DNA of 64,000 nt, from positions 62,001-126,000 of the IMG/VR virus record IMGVR_UViG_3300028676_000005, one strand, 5' to 3'. Of the stretch, positions 45,189 through 63,370 are shown piece after piece. Every line of letters starts with the position of its first letter. Position 1 is the first letter of the stretch. Position numbers and translations under genes: made by a program. Under the pieces are notes generated by a model that was not told the DNA's origin, searched no databases, and saw only the letters and a program-made list of their open reading frames with translations.

Positions 45189-46817
45189 TTAGTGTGTGCT
45201 AACAGCAAACAGCTTGCTGGTGATCAACACTGAACTCAGGTTAGCCAGGATTTTGGCAGTTTGCATACCGCCTTTCAACGCTACAACCGAAGCATGTGCT
45301 GTGTCGTAGATACCCAGATCTTCAGGGTAACCAATTTCCCCGTTTGCCAGGTTCACTACGGTAAGGTCACCTTTCAACAGTTCCTTAACGTCAGCGGTCA
45401 GACGTTCGTATTGCATTTCACACACTTCGACAATGTGTTCTAAAATGTTGAGCTTGTTTTGGTCTTTTTCGTTGTAGTATTGGGCAACCACTGTTCGGCA
45501 AGCCTTAATCAGGCTAGTGCCAACCCCAGGCAAGATGCCGTTAGTAAGCGCACTCTTAACAGCTTTGATAACGTCCTCAAAGCGGTCTTTACGCTCTTTA
45601 ACGTCAGCCTCGGTCTCACCGCCAACCCAGATGGTGATAACTTCACCAGAGAGGTTACGAACACGCTCCTCATCAAAACGAGCACGACGACCAAACCGAG
45701 TAGCCCCGTCATAATTACCCAGGGCTTCTTTAATGAGGTCAATACGAGTTTTGATACGCGCTGTTGCCGCAGCATTTGGAGTAAAGACAGAACGGCCAAC
45801 GCCGACGACCAATGGAGTTTCCGTTACCAGCATATTTCTAACGCCACTAACTTGTTCCAGAGCCGACCAAGATGGGACACCAAAGATAGCCGAGAGATCC
45901 TGCATGATCATGCTACCAACTGAACCGCCAGTACCATTAACCCGGCAGCCAATCATGCTCCTGGATGCACGTACGTTGTCAGGATGTTTGTTAAAGCCTA
46001 CTATGAAACTATCCATGGAAGTTTCGATGGAACGACAGATCAGAACAAACACAACATCAGACGCCTCAACAGGTTTAACGGACATAAGCTGTCCCATCAA
46101 CGCACTCAAACGTTCACCATCAGAATTACGAATGGAGTCATCCAGAATAATTGGGATGTATCGGTTGAGTGTACGCTTACCGCCGCTTGGCCCAGAATAA
46201 AGAGCTGAGTTGCTGTACTCCATGTTGATAGTAAGTCCGTTACCACGAACAATCTTGTCGGTATCTTCAACACCGTTAATCAGATCAAACGAAGGGAACG
46301 AATTAGGATTAGCACGATACTGGTCAATGACAATCTGGCTCAACCCTTCATCATTGTTAGACGAAGTAAGAGCCAGTTTGAAAAGCCGATCATCATTAAC
46401 ATCAATAATGATTGCCTGCTCACGCAAAGAGTGAATCAACTTTTCGCCAACTTCTTCGATAAACCGTTGGTCGCGATAGGTTGGATACCCACGGAACAGA
46501 TTGTAGAACGCCGAAGTCAGCATGATGGTAGTGGTGGTGCCGTCACCACATTCTTCATCAGTCTTGATTGGTGCTTGAGTCATGATCTTGTTGACCACTT
46601 CTTCACGCGGGTCGTTGAATGTAATTGCACGAGCAACGGTTACGCCATCTTTGGTAACCTTAGTGCTGTTACCGGTGGTGAGTACTGCCAGACGACCGTT
46701 AGGACCCATCGTGGCGGTTACAGCCTGGTCTACAGTCTCGACCACTTTGGTTACCATTGTTCTTACATCAGCGTCCAGAGTAATGAACTGAACGGCACCA
46801 TTTTTAACTTCCGACAT
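45189..46817 (-). CDS. groEL: Phage GroEL-like chaperonin
   Basis: TMGPNGR, TKDGVTVA, GDGTTT, ERKDRFED and GILPGVG motifs; 542 aa; no GGM tail. Confidence 0.95.
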   Translation of the reverse strand: MSEVKNGAVQFITLDADVRTMVTKVVETVDQAVTATMGPNGRLAVLTTGNSTKVTKDGVTVARAITFNDPREEVVNKIMTQAPIKTDEECGDGTTTTIMLTSAFYNLFRGYPTYRDQRFIEEVGEKLIHSLREQAIIIDVNDDRLFKLALTSSNNDEGLSQIVIDQYRANPNSFPSFDLINGVEDTDKIVRGNGLTINMEYSNSALYSGPSGGKRTLNRYIPIILDDSIRNSDGERLSALMGQLMSVKPVEASDVVFVLICRSIETSMDSFIVGFNKHPDNVRASRSMIGCRVNGTGGSVGSMIMQDLSAIFGVPSWSALEQVSGVRNMLVTETPLVVGVGRSVFTPNAAATARIKTRIDLIKEALGNYDGATRFGRRARFDEERVRNLSGEVITIWVGGETEADVKERKDRFEDVIKAVKSALTNGILPGVGTSLIKACRTVVAQYYNEKDQNKLNILEHIVEVCEMQYERLTADVKELLKGDLTVVNLANGEIGYPEDLGIYDTAHASVVALKGGMQTAKILANLSSVLITSKLFAVSTH

Positions 46818-52606: not shown

Positions 52607-53542
52607 TTACCCCTTGTTTTTTGGATTTTCATAAGACAGGGTGTTTGCGTACTTTTCGGCAGCAGTCTCATGATTACTCTTAAGCAGGTTGTAATTTTTC
52701 ATGATTACTTCCCGCATGATGGTGTTGCCATTCTGGGTACAGACATAAATAGCCTGGTTACCAGCAGAGTCGTGAGCGATATGTAGCACACGGTTGTCAC
52801 TGGTAACGTGTGTACGATGATAAACGTCGCCCTCCATAAGAGCAGGAATGGTGACGTTGAAGCCTTCTGGGGCTTCTTTACCGCTCAGTGAATTCCAGAG
52901 AGAACGCGGGCCGGTCAGGGCTTCTGGAAGTTTAAAGCACGGACTGTCGTTAATAACGATTTCCGCACGGTTACCTTCTTTGTCCAACGGCATTTGGTCA
53001 TCAGGAATTACTGTGCAGATAACCCCACGATCACCGTGCATATCGGTGAGTTTGTAAGGATACTTGTGTTCGCCCAAAGCAGCGCGACCTTTGTCAGTAA
53101 GACATTGTGAAGTCAAACAGTCGTGATCAAGTAATGCAAGATCCAGACCTTCACCACGAATGTCCATTTGTTCTTGTTGACCTGGATGAATCAGACCGGC
53201 AGTTTCTGCATTGGCCTTTGCATTCATTGCGTCGTAAATGAGTTGATCCGCTCCAGGCATGACACCTTCAAAATCAGCGTTCATCCCCTTTACATGTCGG
53301 TGTGGGGTAATTGCATATGACACACCGCCAATCGATACCCAATCGCCAGTGATATGAATACCACAAAAGCCCCAAAAGGACTTTACCACTTTGCGCATAT
53401 GACCTTGCATTTGGTCAATGCCCAAAACAATGGACGCACGATCTTCCGCAGAGGCCTGATTCCAGAAGTCCATAACAAACTTTTGGATTGCTTCGTTACC
53501 TTCAACGTCAGCCAAGTCTTTGATGAAATCAAAAATGTTCAT
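52607..53542 (-). CDS. Mosaic protein with RNA polymerase active-site-like peptides
   Basis: 311 aa, GAGG SD; NADFEG and KLTDMHGDRGVIC...DDQMPLDKEGNRAEIVIN. Confidence 0.8.
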   Translation of the reverse strand: MNIFDFIKDLADVEGNEAIQKFVMDFWNQASAEDRASIVLGIDQMQGHMRKVVKSFWGFCGIHITGDWVSIGGVSYAITPHRHVKGMNADFEGVMPGADQLIYDAMNAKANAETAGLIHPGQQEQMDIRGEGLDLALLDHDCLTSQCLTDKGRAALGEHKYPYKLTDMHGDRGVICTVIPDDQMPLDKEGNRAEIVINDSPCFKLPEALTGPRSLWNSLSGKEAPEGFNVTIPALMEGDVYHRTHVTSDNRVLHIAHDSAGNQAIYVCTQNGNTIMREVIMKNYNLLKSNHETAAEKYANTLSYENPKNKG

Positions 53543-55260: not shown

Positions 55261-55944
55261 CTAAATGACTTTTAAGTCATTCAAATCCAGCAAAGTGAAT
55301 TTACCAATACCAGGACGCCACCCTTCGGTATCAATGTAGTAGGTGTTACCCAGCTGGAGCATTTCCGGAACCGGGTTATGTCCCACCACTACCGCAAAGA
55401 TATCTTTGATTGGAGTAGCGTCCTTCAAGTTAAAACGAATACGGCTGTGGAAGCACTCATTCATTACAAGCTTGTGAGACTTGCGACGAAAGTTGTTCTC
55501 AAGGGCGTACACTAACTCAGCCCAGCTATCAAAATTACAGGCAGCATGAACAATACCAACGGTACCTTGTTTAGTGGCTACCTCAATTAAAACAGGCAGT
55601 TCAGTAAACTTGTCTACCAGCATGTCCTGATCCCTGAAATCAAGATGTTTGAACCACGCCCCCTTGTCTTTGTGGTTAAGCCATTTAGGTCGTGTAGCGT
55701 AGTTGACTAAATGGTTATCGTGGTTCCCACGTACCGATTCGGCATTATGCTTAGCAAGCCAAGCAGCAGCTTCATGAGACTTAGGACCACGATCTACCAA
55801 GTCACCCACAATAAACAACCGGTCTACTGCTTTGTTGTAGCCAATGCGTTCAAGCTCTGCATCAACTTCATCAAAGTGACCATGCACGTCCCCACAAGCA
55901 ATATCCCGTCCTAGAGTGTTAACCCCGAATCTTTTAACATACAT
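55261..55944 (-). CDS. Ser/Thr protein phosphatase (lambda NinI/PphA-like PPP family)
   Basis: GDVHG, GDLVDRGP, RGNHD, VHA, VGH and YIDT motifs. Confidence 0.93.
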   Translation of the reverse strand: MYVKRFGVNTLGRDIACGDVHGHFDEVDAELERIGYNKAVDRLFIVGDLVDRGPKSHEAAAWLAKHNAESVRGNHDNHLVNYATRPKWLNHKDKGAWFKHLDFRDQDMLVDKFTELPVLIEVATKQGTVGIVHAACNFDSWAELVYALENNFRRKSHKLVMNECFHSRIRFNLKDATPIKDIFAVVVGHNPVPEMLQLGNTYYIDTEGWRPGIGKFTLLDLNDLKVI

Positions 55945-55975
55945 ACCTACCTCTGAATTTTAATTGTACTTAGTA

Positions 55976-56236
55976 TTACGGCGCTGTTTTAATAGACCCT
56001 GCGTCGTCGATCGCTTTGATCAACTTGTCATAGTCTTCTTTGGCCTTAGTCTTGGCCGTCAGCTTTACCAAGCATTCAGTGGTACGGTATTCCCCATTAC
56101 ACATTTCTTTTTGGCCGCCATCGACAATTTTCCAAGCAATGGTAGCCGCAAGTACAACGCCAAGAAGCCCAAGTACGATTGAGATAATTTTTACACTGCG
56201 TCTGATGTAAGGGTCAGACTCAGAGAAACCTTTCAT
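55976..56236 (-). CDS. Single-pass membrane protein, C-x3-Y-x-T-x2-C family
   Basis: TM followed by CNGEYRTTEC. Confidence 0.8.
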   Translation of the reverse strand: MKGFSESDPYIRRSVKIISIVLGLLGVVLAATIAWKIVDGGQKEMCNGEYRTTECLVKLTAKTKAKEDYDKLIKAIDDAGSIKTAP

Positions 56237-56745
56237 GGCGTAATTACGATCTTGTTAGTAAAGATAACCCAATCAATCCCACGGGCATGGACCATTTTGG
56301 TTTCTTGAGGAATGTAGTTACCCTCATGCAGTTCCAAGATTAAAGTGCTGGCCAGCTTGCCGTTAGCAATTAACCCCTCTTGTAAAAGCTCAAGCATAAT
56401 TTCCCGAACGTATTCTCGCGGTTTACGTCGCATGGCACGGCTGCCATTATGAAGATACGGAGTCATTGCATCTTCAAGACGTTGAAATAAATTAACCCCA
56501 TAACCAACACCTTCATCGATCACGTTAAGATCAAAATGAATGTAAGCCGGTTCAATAGGTTTCGGCTTAGGGATAGTCTTATCCAGGCTACGGAGACGTT
56601 CCTGAAGATAGGCTTTCATCTCAGGACCGGAGGGACGGGTATCTTCGCCAGAACGCTTGGTGGTGTCGTAGATGTTGTAATACGACAACAGGTTAGCCAG
56701 GTCCGCTAAAGACATTAAGTCCAACTTCTTTTTACATGGTGTCAT
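56233..56745 (-). CDS. Hypothetical protein
   Basis: 170 aa, ATGA overlaps. Confidence 0.75.
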   Translation of the reverse strand: MTPCKKKLDLMSLADLANLLSYYNIYDTTKRSGEDTRPSGPEMKAYLQERLRSLDKTIPKPKPIEPAYIHFDLNVIDEGVGYGVNLFQRLEDAMTPYLHNGSRAMRRKPREYVREIMLELLQEGLIANGKLASTLILELHEGNYIPQETKMVHARGIDWVIFTNKIVITP

Positions 56746-57269
56746 AATAATGTGGTCCTTTCATGCACGGCCACCCAAACGCCATAACGCTGGATGAGAT
56801 AAGTTGGCGAACCCATTATGGGATAAATATCACCCATAAAGGAAATACGAACGTTAAACCCGGCCAGTAAGCTGTCATATACCGGTGTTGGAATATCGAC
56901 CGCCCCAGGAGTATTCAGGTAAGCCTGTGCGACCAGTTCTGATTCAGCGCTGATCTTGTAAAACAGATCAATGATTTTCTCCAGGGGAAGCTCTGGATAC
57001 CCGTACGACAACAAATTAATGTAAACCGGGTTTGGGCGGTGTCCAATCAAAAACATAATGGTGTTTTTGAAATTCTCTTTATAATTATTAGCCAGTGCTT
57101 CCGCCAAACTTTGTTTAGCTAAAGTCTCGTTATCAGCCATGCGCTTACGACTTTCAGCATGGTAAAGCGCCACCCGACGATCTACTTCAGTAGGTTCTTT
57201 AGCAACTTCAACACGACCAAAGTTGCTAAAAAGACCCTTGAAATACATCCACCAAATCCAGTTCTTCAT
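56742..57269 (-). CDS. Hypothetical protein
   Basis: 175 aa, ATGA overlaps. Confidence 0.75.
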   Translation of the reverse strand: MKNWIWWMYFKGLFSNFGRVEVAKEPTEVDRRVALYHAESRKRMADNETLAKQSLAEALANNYKENFKNTIMFLIGHRPNPVYINLLSYGYPELPLEKIIDLFYKISAESELVAQAYLNTPGAVDIPTPVYDSLLAGFNVRISFMGDIYPIMGSPTYLIQRYGVWVAVHERTTLL

Positions 57270-57619
57270 TTGTTTTCCTTTATGTATTTTTCATAAGCTG
57301 CTTTATTGCCTGCAGTTTTTCGCTCATGACACGCAGGAGTATCAAACTTACCCCAGCAATGGCGGTAATCAAAACCTTTAGCCCAGGTAGACAAATCTTC
57401 TGCCTGTTTTTGCATACCCATTGTAACTAGCCAGCTAAACAGCACAATCCCCGCAATAACGAATACAACATCACGAAAGGTTCGCAGACGACCTTTCAAA
57501 CTACGAGATTCAGCCAACTTAGCCGCTTCTTCTTCCCGGCGCTTTTTACTCATGCCGTGGACATACGCTAAAGTTTCTTTGCTAAGTGGCGCTGGGATAG
57601 GTGGTATATTTCTTGACAT
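57266..57619 (-). CDS. Single-pass membrane protein, Cys-motif family
   Basis: ATG 57619; TM followed by CWGKFDTPAC. Confidence 0.8.
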   Translation of the reverse strand: MSRNIPPIPAPLSKETLAYVHGMSKKRREEEAAKLAESRSLKGRLRTFRDVVFVIAGIVLFSWLVTMGMQKQAEDLSTWAKGFDYRHCWGKFDTPACHERKTAGNKAAYEKYIKENK

Positions 57620-57623
57620 GTGA

Positions 57624-57872
57624 TCACCAATTAGTTCTGAAGATGGCCGCATAAAGGACCATGACTGTAATAGGGATGACCTGAGCAGCAAGTAACAGCG
57701 TTGCTGCTTTATTCTGCTTCATACGTTTCCAGATACTTTTGCGCGGCTTACGTGGTGCCGGTGCGGTATCAACAATGGTGGCAAAAAATACTGGTTCGTC
57801 CAAGTGCAATTCCTCATAAAGAGGTTGTGCAGATAACCGACGTGCTTTAAGTCGTTTATGCTTGCCGCGCAT
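57624..57872 (-). CDS. Small basic protein with a C-terminal TM
   Basis: 82 aa. Confidence 0.7.
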   Translation of the reverse strand: MRGKHKRLKARRLSAQPLYEELHLDEPVFFATIVDTAPAPRKPRKSIWKRMKQNKAATLLLAAQVIPITVMVLYAAIFRTNW

Positions 57873-57874
57873 GT

Positions 57875-58168
57875 TTATTCTGCCTTATTAATGTTTTGAA
57901 TCTGGCGTTCATAACTTTCGCGGGCTAACGTTGCTTTAAGACGACGCTCCAAGCACGGTGACGTGTCATACTTAGCAACACACGTTTGCTGAAAGATGAA
58001 ATCGAGGTCAGCGCGTTTATTAGCAACAAAGCGTTCGATACCCAAGAGAACTGGCACCCCAATGGCCGCGATAAGCAGAACCACCAGAATGTAACGCCAA
58101 ACCTTTTTAGCTTGTTTGTTTTTAGACAGATCAGGTCCGTTAAACAAATAGTTAATTACACCTTTCAT
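57875..58168 (-). CDS. Single-pass membrane protein, Cys-motif family
   Basis: ATG 58168 (TAATG coupling); TM followed by CVAKYDTSPC. Confidence 0.8.
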   Translation of the reverse strand: MKGVINYLFNGPDLSKNKQAKKVWRYILVVLLIAAIGVPVLLGIERFVANKRADLDFIFQQTCVAKYDTSPCLERRLKATLARESYERQIQNINKAE

Positions 58169-58290
58169 TAGCAAGCTCCTGTTAACATTGTCTTAACACC
58201 AAACAACACAAGCAAACAGCAAAAGATCACGATCCCAAAGAAAGCAAAGGCGTATTTTTCGCGTCTAAAGAAATCCTTTATCTTTTTCAT
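58168..58290 (-). CDS. 40-aa membrane peptide (not in ORF track)
   Basis: MKKIKDFFRREKYAFAFFGIVIFCCLLVLFGVKTMLTGAC*; GAGGT SD; coupled to both neighbours. Confidence 0.75.
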   Translation of the reverse strand: MKKIKDFFRREKYAFAFFGIVIFCCLLVLFGVKTMLTGAC

Positions 58291-58544
58291 TGCCCCACCT
58301 CATGTTTTTTACGGGATTCAAGTAGCAACTGTTCAATCTTGAGTTGGTGACACGGAATAGTGTTGTAATCACCAGTACAGTCTTTAATAGCAGCAGTACG
58401 TTTATCTGTTGTAAGCGCTTTACCCATGTCGCCAAAGACCATTACAACAACAGCACAAATACCACCCACAATAAGTGTGCGAAAGCCGTATTCGACAATC
58501 TTGCTGTTTTGGACTTTTGGATGACGGAGAATCCTGTTAATCAC
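58287..58544 (-). CDS. Single-pass membrane protein, Cys-motif family
   Basis: TM followed by CTGDYNTIPC. Confidence 0.8.
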   Translation of the reverse strand: MINRILRHPKVQNSKIVEYGFRTLIVGGICAVVVMVFGDMGKALTTDKRTAAIKDCTGDYNTIPCHQLKIEQLLLESRKKHEVGQ

Positions 58545-58768
58545 TTATTGAGTTCCTTTATTTGTTGTTCGTAAGCTTCTTTAGCTTTTGCTTCTTCGAC
58601 CATCCGCATCAAACAAGCTGAAGTACGATAACTCGCTTCACAGTTTTCTTGGGCGGATTTCCGATCAAGATAAAAAACACCCCAAAAGAACCCACCAATA
58701 ATTGAAAGCACGACAAGGATTCCAAAGATTTCTTTCGGAGTATATTTTTTAGAGTTGCTCATAATCAT
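58541..58768 (-). CDS. Single-pass membrane protein, Cys-motif family
   Basis: TM followed by CEASYRTSAC. Confidence 0.8.
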   Translation of the reverse strand: MIMSNSKKYTPKEIFGILVVLSIIGGFFWGVFYLDRKSAQENCEASYRTSACLMRMVEEAKAKEAYEQQIKELNK

Positions 58769-58792
58769 CTCTTTTCTTAGATAAAAAATAAA

Positions 58793-58820
58793 CTACCAAG
58801 TCCCGTAAAGGACCTGGTAG
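58793..58820 (-). terminator. Hairpin terminator
   Basis: CTACCA.GTCC/GGAC.TGGTAG stem followed by TTTATTTTTT on the minus strand. Confidence 0.7.
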
Positions 58821-58854
58821 CTACATATTAATTGGCTAACAGTTGAGAAACAAA

Positions 58855-59244
58855 TTACTTGTCAGCTCTAAACCCATGAACACTCATTGTTAATGGTTCA
58901 GGTGGTATTGGTTTTTCTGGCCTCTTGGGTAGATTAGGAGTTGGGTTCTCCATATCAATGATTTCTTTGCCTTCTAGGCGCTTTAGGCGACCGCTCAAGA
59001 AACGCAAACGATGGATCACAGCCTTGAGTAGCTCTTTGTAGTAAATGTTGTCAGCCAACGCTAGATAGTTTTCCAGACGGATAACCTCTTTGGCCAGTTC
59101 GTTATCAGACAGATGACCCAGGGCCAATTCGTCACGTTCGCACAACGAATTGTCAGCGGCCTTGGCTGGAGTACGAAACCCCATATGAGGGTCTAACTCT
59201 TGAAACAACTTATCTTCAAAATATTCAATCACTTTTTCCGTCAT
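58855..59244 (-). CDS. Hypothetical protein (paralogue of the N-domain of 35531-36598)
   Basis: 129 aa; HLSDNELA...RLRFLS.RL..LEG. Confidence 0.75.
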   Translation of the reverse strand: MTEKVIEYFEDKLFQELDPHMGFRTPAKAADNSLCERDELALGHLSDNELAKEVIRLENYLALADNIYYKELLKAVIHRLRFLSGRLKRLEGKEIIDMENPTPNLPKRPEKPIPPEPLTMSVHGFRADK

Positions 59245-59719
59245 GACTACGTTCCTTCTTTATTTGAGCTAAACGTAATAGTCCGGCATCACGGGCTTCA
59301 ATAAGGCTACACCCTTTACCCTGACAGCGGTACCAGTCCATCCATTCAGCACTTAACCCACCAGCAACTTTGCCATGGATATTAGGCTCACCCCCGGTGG
59401 TTGCTACCTGCTCACTGTCCAACATGCCTGAATGTTTATGATCATGCATTGATAGCGCTGCTGTAACAACAGGGTTACCAAAATCTAATCGGGCGTCAGA
59501 AAGGTACAAGGGCTGTTGATCACCGATTATTACTCGGTAAATGTGACCGTTCATGTGGTCTTTACCGACTTTGTCCACACGAGCGTTCAAGTCCAATTTA
59601 AAGCCTCCACTGTACACCTTTAACAATTCTTCTGGAATAACAAGGCCAGGAAGAACTTCCACACTAATATCTGGTTGTTTAATTCGGCTCATCTCACACC
59701 TGTGGTCGTGGGTCAACAA
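59225..59719 (-). CDS. Hypothetical protein with a C-terminal WxxWY module
   Basis: The true start is probably the internal MSRIKQ. Confidence 0.7.
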   Translation of the reverse strand: MLTHDHRCEMSRIKQPDISVEVLPGLVIPEELLKVYSGGFKLDLNARVDKVGKDHMNGHIYRVIIGDQQPLYLSDARLDFGNPVVTAALSMHDHKHSGMLDSEQVATTGGEPNIHGKVAGGLSAEWMDWYRCQGKGCSLIEARDAGLLRLAQIKKERSHDGKSD

Positions 59720-62776: not shown

Positions 62777-63370
62777 TTAGCTCCAGAAAGCCTTACCAGG
62801 CTTAAAGTAGACTTGAGCACGATTAAATACGCAGTACTCAACCTCCCCCGCAGAGCCGTGCCCACTGCCGGCGTGAATAGCACCATCGTAGCCAGCTTGG
62901 ACCAATCGACGTATTTCAAAGACGCTGTCGAAGAAACGATAAGCTTGGAAATAAAGATTATTGATATCTTCACCGGCTAACAAATAAGCTTTGACATCCG
63001 CATATTTATTATTAGCGTTAATCCGGTCTCGCCAATTATCAGTCTCCTCAATGTACTTTGAGAAGCGCAAGGCGATACGTTGGGCATCAATTGAACCCAG
63101 AGTGGCGGTAATGTGTTCAAACTCCAGGAACGCGCCCTGAGGTTGGTTAATGAACGGGTTTGCCATCAAGAGGTGCACTGGGAAAATGCGCGACGTATAG
63201 TAGTTACCGTCATTCTCGACAGTATCTGCATAAATCTCGGCGGTCTTAAGACTACCGAAGTAAATACGCCGCATGCGATAAAACGGTTCGATCTGATGCG
63301 GGTGGTTGCACTCACCCCGGTAAAGGGTAAGTGGATTGCCCTCCGCATCCTTAAGAAAGAAAGGATTCAT
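62777..63370 (-). CDS. ADP-ribosyltransferase-like protein (ART-PolyVal type)
   Basis: D.EGNPL.LYRG, IYF...A..YA, PV.L...NP, GYDG.I and EYCVF...QV. Confidence 0.75.
   Translation of the reverse strand: MNPFFLKDAEGNPLTLYRGECNHPHQIEPFYRMRRIYFGSLKTAEIYADTVENDGNYYTSRIFPVHLLMANPFINQPQGAFLEFEHITATLGSIDAQRIALRFSKYIEETDNWRDRINANNKYADVKAYLLAGEDINNLYFQAYRFFDSVFEIRRLVQAGYDGAIHAGSGHGSAGEVEYCVFNRAQVYFKPGKAFWS

Follow-up and report, generated by a model that had tools for sequence, protein, structure and literature searches.

An array of small single-pass membrane protein paralogues with an invariant cysteine pair in an uncultured phiKZ-like jumbo phage

Small single-pass proteins with a disulfide-stabilised periplasmic head are already known. 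In phage T4, the antiholin RI and the class III holin T are bitopic and function through their periplasmic domains, and T has a periplasmic disulfide. T4 also encodes Sp (spackle) and Imm, small early envelope proteins that act in superinfection exclusion. Sp is a helical periplasmic protein of ∼97 amino acids (aa) with a membrane or signal segment at its N-terminus; it blocks the lysozyme of an incoming phage. MgrB, the 47-aa inhibitor of the PhoQ sensor kinase in enterobacteria, is bitopic and N-in/C-out, and its two periplasmic Cys residues are essential; SafA and MzrA are also bitopic, with cytoplasmic N-termini and a membrane helix that is mainly an anchor for a periplasmic working end (PMC8404706). 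An array of genes found at positions 55976 to 58768 of a 64,000-nucleotide (nt) stretch of DNA (the window) from the IMG/VR virus record IMGVR_UViG_3300028676_000005 encodes five small bitopic proteins, P1 to P5, that share the motif C-x3-[YF]-x-T-x2-C. What is new is that proteins with a predicted head of this kind occur as conserved multi-paralogue arrays in giant phages.

The array proteins share with MgrB the small bitopic design and two conserved Cys residues, with a topology that is predicted here. There is no sequence similarity, however, and none of 49 aligned members of the array family matches the Pfam MgrB model at E<=0.05. The Cys spacing is C-x10-C in MgrB (C28, C39) and C-x8-C in the array family. 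The phage-encoded proteins are larger (68–172 aa), carry an extra C-terminal amphipathic helix and form arrays of 3–6 paralogues. The membrane helix of MgrB itself contributes to binding, whereas the membrane helices of the array family drift. T4 Sp and Imm show no detectable homology to the array proteins (no PHROG match); they are single genes and lack the C-x3-aromatic-x-T-x2-C loop. The array family likewise differs from T4 RI and T in showing no homology, no lysis-gene context and multiple paralogues.

Five motifs had been quoted in a sequence-only reading of the window, and all are found, on the minus strand: CNGEYRTTEC at 56072–56101 (P1), CWGKFDTPAC at 57329–57358 (P2), CVAKYDTSPC at 57953–57982 (P3), CTGDYNTIPC at 58350–58379 (P4) and CEASYRTSAC at 58613–58642 (P5). 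A scan of the 229,429-bp genome in six frames gives exactly these five matches, all in the 2.8-kb array; mononucleotide-shuffled genomes give a mean of 1.64 scattered matches and a maximum of 4. When the genome's 3,431 open reading frames (ORFs) are searched with a hidden Markov model (HMM) of the five proteins, these score E values of 3e-23 to 4e-37 and no other is recovered; the best non-member ORF stands at E 0.9. Single-sequence phmmer comparisons link P1 to P5 (5e-7) and P3 to P5 (1e-6). P2 and P4 are weak pairwise (E 0.09–0.5), and their best matches are still family members. The specific HMM and the phmmer matches uphold the proposed kinship, and the five genes are real paralogues of a family of small bitopic inner-membrane proteins.

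P5 (58541–58768, minus strand, as are all genes of the array) has 75 aa, or 73 aa from an alternative ATG at 58762, with a membrane helix at residues 14–32, a C43–C52 loop and then a C-terminal helix. P1 (55976–56236; 86 aa) is of the same P5/P1 type, with a membrane helix at 17–35 and a C46–C55 loop. P4 (58287–58544; 85 aa) is of the P4 type (CTGDYNTIPCHQLKIEQLLLESR) and has a likely GTG start at 58544 that overlaps the P5 stop. P3 (57875–58168; 97 aa, likely ATG at 58168) has its membrane helix at 26–44 and its loop at C63–C72. P2 (57266–57619; 117 aa) has a long N-tail, a membrane helix at 51–69 and a highly conserved WAKGFDYRHCWGKFDTPACHERK ectodomain; its likely start is the ATG at 57619, as against the TTG at 57691 of the mechanical ORF list. 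Each protein has a net-positive N-tail and one hydrophobic 19-mer (Kyte-Doolittle 2.05–2.83), as had been described for all five, and exactly two Cys residues after the membrane helix. The helix pattern A+..Y[ED]+.I+, earlier said to be frequent, is present in P5, P3, P2 and P1 but not in P4, whose helix reads HQLKIEQLLLESR. A Flp/Fap pilin identity (PF04964) for P4 was rejected at E 0.062 and 13.5 bits against a cut-off of 32.2. The EY of the pilin G/XXXXEY site is present in P4, but Asn rather than Gly occupies the cleavage position and most P4-type orthologues are without EY.

Every one of the 78 distinct family sequences, which comprise database clusters and loci on related 184–244-kb phage contigs, has both Cys residues. 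Loss of the pair in orthologues, which the sequence-only reading had named as evidence against itself, is thus not observed. The motif Thr is missing in one or two members, for example CEAEWDLPAC. All 58 full-length members have one membrane helix, and in 57 of them exactly two Cys residues follow it. The flank on the N-terminal side of the helix is more positive than the other in 45 of the 58, N-flanks being net positive and C-flanks about neutral; the mean charge over the 58 is +3.8 for the whole N-tail and +0.6 for the C-terminal part. N-tails of P2 type are 40–108 residues long, rich in Pro, Arg and Lys and devoid of a signal peptide, and they should stay cytoplasmic. An N-in/C-out topology with a periplasmic disulfide is favoured by the charge bias, by these N-tails and by an invariant Cys pair that is unaccompanied by other conserved metal ligands. 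The Cys and charge data thus agree with the disulfide-closed periplasmic loop of the sequence-only reading, in which both loop closure and topology remain predictions.

The P2-type N-tails (window 57266–57619, P0007, P0021, P0035, P0040 and L004:9032-9394) begin with a conserved MPxNxxxPxxRP and contain polyproline runs of up to PPPPPPP. Such a tail may be a cytoplasmic docking tail.

It is very unlikely that the proteins are inserted the other way, N-out/C-in as PspB is, with a cytoplasmic C-terminus whose Cys residues would bind metal or act as a redox switch. One of the 49 members does match Pfam PspB (PF06667, E 6e-4), and a His lies beside the second Cys in P2 and P4 types and also before the first in P2 types (HC...CH). 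Yet this His is absent from P5/P1 and P3 types while the Cys pair is universal, and two Cys residues alone make no metal site. The charge bias favours N-in, and the long P2-type N-tails without a signal peptide are also at odds with an N-out insertion. PspB resembles the family in its ∼75 aa and in one membrane helix followed by a charged helix, but it is without the Cys pair and its topology is opposite to N-in/C-out. With a profile match in that single member, identity with PspB was rejected.

An AlphaFold2 model of P5, built with a 49-sequence alignment, has a predicted local distance difference test score (pLDDT) of 81.6. It displays a helix at 11–42 (membrane and juxtamembrane), a short loop and a second helix at 50–74, with C43 and C52 at opposite ends of the interhelix loop. 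From the model and the sequence, the conserved Thr, three residues before the second Cys, could cap the second helix. In sequence, the C-terminal helices have a hydrophobic stripe spaced 3–4, heptad-like and flanked by Lys and Glu. A fold search with the P5 model against PDB gave no match.

A profile of the five proteins was scored against 1.84 billion representative proteins at E<1e-3 and matched 44 clusters, all of 68–172 aa. A word-indexed search added a few further members, all unnamed, on contigs of up to 242 kb. Arrays are present in at least seven distinct phage lineages, each with 3–6 copies in one place: L002; L004/L035 (∼244 kb); L005/L029 (236 kb); L006/L037 (184–233 kb); L028, the closest relative; L030 (111 kb); and L031/L032. 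Searched with the profile, each of two whole IMG/VR genomes yields five copies exactly, all within a single array. Relatives thus occur beyond this genome, on related jumbo-phage contigs; two pattern scans of 185,579 cellular genomes (species) found none. Phages EL and RisingSun have no family member by profile, and tblastn of P2 and P5 against 50,697 GenBank phage records gave only membrane-helix matches in Streptomyces phages (E 9). No significant family was matched in Pfam and PHROGs by single proteins or by all 49 aligned members, and P2 found only unnamed viral clusters in the ESM Atlas, with scores below the reliable level. The family is not described in the literature on jumbo-phage membrane proteins, the topic to which the literature search was confined. 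It is previously undescribed and has no detectable relative in curated libraries; as far as public data show, it is restricted to uncultured phiKZ-like jumbo phages related to RisingSun and EL.

The copies sort into P5/P1, P4, P3 and P2 types. In a maximum-likelihood tree of the core region (48 columns), where many forks lack resolution, a P2-type clade of 17 rows (support 97/90) has the signature WAKxxDYRHCxGKFDTPxCHERKAKENAxAY, and a P4-type clade of 27 rows (support 98/92) has the signature CxGxYNTIPCHQYKIEQLLLESR. The CL-type sequences include two smaller clades, of 5 and 3 rows, and the P5/P1-like group is unresolved. In the lineages retrieved by P2-type or P4-type queries, one or more of several types are present, and their order is the same: P5-like, P4-like, P3-like, and P2-type last. 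The paralogue types are therefore old, and related phages have their orthologues arranged in the same order. The array can also gain or lose members, and P4 is absent from the close relative L028.

Conservation is concentrated in the head of the proteins. Within types, mean pairwise identity is 50–67% in the Cys loop and 35–51% in the C-terminal helix, as against 15–46% in the juxtamembrane linker, 19–31% in the membrane helix and 17–33% in the N-tail. In P2 and P4 the ectodomain reaches roughly the level of conservation of the phosphatase encoded next to the array. For P2, ectodomain identities to other lineages are 93, 69, 44, 47 and 52%, and those of the phosphatase are 95, 63, 51, 60 and 47%. 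Between this genome and L028, the P2 ectodomain is 93% identical while the N-tail and membrane helix together are 52% identical. Whole-protein identities to L028 are 47% (P5), 69% (P2), 77% (P1) and 81% (P3); neighbouring genes are 87–96% identical. The ratio of nonsynonymous to synonymous substitution rates (dN/dS) in this comparison is 0.10–0.39 (P3 0.10, P1 0.31). From these ratios and the divergence of the relative, the family is under purifying selection and evolves somewhat faster than its neighbours, mostly in the tail and anchor.

These data modify the earlier description of a diversified loop. The loops do differ between types, but within a type the loop and the following helix are the most conserved parts. 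The pattern is not that of a rapidly diversifying exclusion family, since heads are conserved within types and the paralogues are old and orthologous across lineages. Because the head is conserved while the helix and N-tail drift, the membrane helix is seen as the anchor and the loop with its C-terminal helix as the working end, which points to a tethered binding module rather than a pore.

The reading that is favoured, if tentatively, is that the array encodes membrane-tethered periplasmic binding modules: takeover or exclusion factors that are directed at the envelope and act on the periplasmic side of the inner membrane. Each protein would insert N-in/C-out, and a host periplasmic oxidase would close the 10-residue C-x3-aromatic-x-T-x2-C loop. 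The disulfide would staple the juxtamembrane helix, where it ends, to the first turn of the C-terminal amphipathic, Lys/Glu-rich helix, which the conserved Thr would cap. The resulting small, rigid, membrane-tethered head would be the binding module. As the head is conserved in each type but differs from type to type, the types probably bind different partners, themselves conserved, on the periplasmic side of the inner membrane. MgrB, SafA and MzrA, which act on sensor kinases, are the nearest functional analogues of this proposed mode, and T4 Sp is the closest analogue from a phage. The takeover or exclusion part of the reading is suggested by the position of the operon among phosphatase, ADP-ribosyltransferase-like and acetyltransferase-like genes.

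The five genes belong to a block of nine that runs from 58768 to 55976 on the minus strand with hardly any intergenic space. Two further membrane peptides are interleaved with them, as had been noticed. The first, tm40 (58168–58290), is a 40-aa single-helix peptide that is missing from the ORF list; the second, tm82 (57624–57872), is an 82-aa protein with a basic N-part and a C-terminal membrane helix of the tail-anchored type. The basic part of tm82 comprises 58 residues, and similar-shaped but non-homologous proteins are found at the same place in L004 and L006. Both peptides are confined to this lineage. Compared with L028, tm40 is 62% identical (dN/dS 0.28), and it was not found in more distant lineages; tm82 is the most constrained gene of the block (91% identity, dN/dS 0.04). 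The remaining two genes, g175 (56742–57269; 175 aa, soluble-looking) and g170 (56233–56745; 170 aa, found in this lineage only), lie between P2 and P1, which ends the coupled block. An AlphaFold2 model of g175 (pLDDT 80.7) has no fold relatives in PDB or AlphaFold DB clusters, and g175 as a single query against viral contigs gave no match; a homologue of g175 is nevertheless encoded in the examined related lineages, where it separates the array from the phosphatase gene.

The genes are mostly translationally coupled, again in agreement with the sequence-only reading. The P5/P4 junction is a GTGA overlap, and ATGA overlaps are found at P4/tm40, P2/g175, g175/g170 and g170/P1, so that g175 is coupled to P2 and g170 on both sides. 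A one-base overlap joins tm40 and P3, and gaps of 2 nt (P3/tm82) and 4 nt (tm82/P2) separate the others. Such tight coupling favours matched amounts of the products, and it bears on a rather unlikely but credible alternative in which a single heteromeric membrane complex is built from the paralogues, and perhaps from tm40 and tm82 as well, and is held by a periplasmic bundle of amphipathic C-terminal helices. The functional unit would then be the complex and not the single protein. All lineages examined have kept several types together in an unchanged order, the short-linker types (P5/P1) always accompany long-linker types, and the heptad-like stripes of the C-terminal helices also suit a bundle. 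A complex is harder to reconcile with a copy number that ranges from 3 to 6, with the lack of P4 in L028, where the other genes are 81–96% identical, and with the confinement of tm40 and tm82 to one lineage. The membrane helices are poorly conserved, so specific contacts would be periplasmic only. A complex prediction for P5, P4, P3 and P2 together returned a score of 0.00, which is no answer and counts neither way.

A role in lysis timing or execution, as a holin, antiholin or i-spanin-like protein, is improbable. An N-in membrane helix followed by a charged, coiled-coil-prone periplasmic helix is the plan of Rz-type i-spanins, and the architecture of T4 RI resembles it as well. Four of the 49 members weakly match the Rz-like spanin phrog_1152 (best E 0.005) and one matches phrog_1026, but none of these matches is significant, and P5 itself scores 0.039. 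The ectodomains of P1–P5 are 33–53 residues long, several-fold too short to bridge the periplasm as a spanin must, and no ATG-started lipobox ORF that could be an o-spanin is present in any frame of 55900–58900. On these three grounds the spanin reading was rejected. A link to an endolysin is also lacking: the only endolysin-like gene found lies at ∼44.6–45.5 kb of the genome (L039:880-1788, minus strand), ∼73 kb from the array at 118–120.8 kb. No known lysis cassette has five paralogues, i-spanins being single, and the low identity of the membrane helix within types is unlike the expectation for pore-forming holins. The endolysin-like ORF itself has 302 aa and two PG_binding-like repeats, and by eye its C-terminal part resembles a phiKZ gp144-type transglycosylase; it is a probable endolysin.

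The array lies in the kind of neighbourhood where host-takeover genes sit. Downstream is a NinI-like Ser/Thr metallophosphatase (55261–55944, minus strand; Metallophos 3e-14, phrog_246 8.7e-52), which most related loci have in syntenic position; a 177-aa protein, also conserved, is encoded downstream as well. An ORF at 62777–63370 (minus strand) resembles an ART-PolyVal ADP-ribosyltransferase, with a match (E 9e-5) below the cut-off, and nearby same-strand ORFs resemble acetyltransferases by eye. A 164-aa protein just upstream (59225–59719, minus strand) belongs to a multi-copy family that by jackhmmer has several copies per related locus (L004, L005, L006, L028, L030, L033), with a maximum of ∼8 in L030. 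In L004 (12862-13773) and in a 31-kb relative contig, a Kelch-repeat beta-propeller of ∼300 aa is encoded close to the array but on the other strand. In four other lineages, the P2-type gene is directly followed by genes for a 363-aa multi-pass Cys-rich membrane protein and a 180-aa protein resembling LemA, and the g175 homologue comes after these (L004:9394-10485 and L004:10499-11041; homologues in L005, L006, L031 and L032). Both are absent from this genome. The 180-aa protein falls in ESM Atlas clusters labelled ‘LemA family’ or ‘virion structural protein’.

Between the upstream gene (58855–59244) and the array is a GC-rich, terminator-like hairpin with a 14-bp stem (58791–58822, minus strand). 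Directly after it, 15 nt before the first ATG, is a TTTATTTTT element (58784–58792, minus strand). The genome has 16 exact copies of TTTATTTTT, 13 of which sit 0–16 nt after a GC-rich hairpin; most are 12–40 nt before a start codon, one of them before the gene for a divergent family B DNA polymerase. It was the only element to emerge from a k-mer search for promoter motifs, and the same hairpin/TTTATTTTT cassette precedes the arrays of L028 and L030. Jumbo phages that encode RNA polymerases have a phage-specific AT-rich motif of ∼10 nt upstream of early operons (PMC7598289). TTTATTTTT may be an AT-rich early-promoter element of this kind, a terminator tail, or both, and hairpin plus TTTATTTTT may constitute a terminator and early-promoter unit of this phage. 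Judged from this cassette, the array proteins are probably made early.

The source record, 229,429 bp long and estimated complete, of which the window represents bases 62001–126000, is present in many peat metagenomes. A lake-water run (X10) contains a ∼97% identical strain that retains the entire array without indels; in that strain a 140-nt block in g170 (window 56370–56511) has the same length but a diverged sequence. The phiKZ-type markers in the genome are PF25620 (1.7e-129), which is the major capsid protein, PF20286 (5e-238) and a gp29PR match. Among the markers are also the divergent DNA polymerase of family B, a split fragment of RNA polymerase beta (RNA_pol_Rpb2_6 match), and homologues of gp26, of gp182 and of gp74 (1.6e-27), the last a subunit of the non-virion RNA polymerase of phiKZ. 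An ORF at window 52607–53542 (minus strand) has a weak match to RNA polymerase beta domain 6 (E 0.0086). The phage GroEL (window 45189–46817, minus strand; phrog_5725, 3.8e-112) is 39–40% identical to the GroEL of phages EL and RisingSun, and the capsid protein is 56% identical to that of RisingSun/Joad (Erwinia) and 51% to that of EL-like Pseudomonas phages. From the capsid identities and the phiKZ markers, the phage is a distant uncultured member of the EL/RisingSun branch of phiKZ-like jumbo phages, and its host is most likely a diderm proteobacterium. At the DNA level, neither near nor distant searches of GenBank phages found similarity to the genome.

This affiliation raises another alternative, specific to nucleus-forming phages, in which the proteins act at the nascent phage nucleus or in the membrane of the early infection vesicle, for example as a channel or tether. 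The channels and membrane components of the vesicle are still to be identified (PMC12908238), and in four related lineages the array adjoins the LemA-like protein with its ‘virion structural protein’ label. Even so, the idea is decidedly unlikely. The family is absent from EL and RisingSun and, by tblastn, from GenBank phages, which means that it cannot belong to the vesicle in general; the vesicle itself could not be built from proteins that are made only after injection, and drifting membrane helices argue against a pore or channel. None of the six candidate ORFs that were searched against PDB sequences matched a chimallin chain.

Several points weigh against the preferred reading of tethered periplasmic binding modules. 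The positive-inside signal is moderate: a count of Lys and Arg alone favours the N side in 29 of the 58 members, with 9 ties. The apparent universality of P2 and P4 types is partly an ascertainment effect, because loci were fetched with queries of those types. The timing of array expression rests on a sequence motif only. Variation in copy number and the missing P4 in L028 fit separable effectors but also a dispensable accessory role, and the fixed order with co-retained types fits a single complex just as well.

A bolder proposal, something of a long shot, is that the array encodes a new envelope device, in which different single-pass subunits joined through disulfide-stapled periplasmic helices would seal or rewire the inner membrane after entry. 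The LemA-like and 363-aa membrane proteins would join it in some lineages. Exclusion of later phages, or the handling of membrane derived from the vesicle, are examples of what this nucleus-forming clade would use the device for.

In jumbo phages of the phiKZ group the nucleus and the early infection vesicle have been intensively studied, while actions on the host envelope are scarcely known. The family described here is conserved and previously unannotated, and its simple predicted architecture of anchor, disulfide loop and helix makes it a tractable entry to the envelope targets of giant phages. Old paralogue types with conserved heads, kept together in one array, present a clear evolutionary pattern. 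Small membrane proteins that act by binding larger membrane machines are a growing class, to which the family would contribute a phage case.

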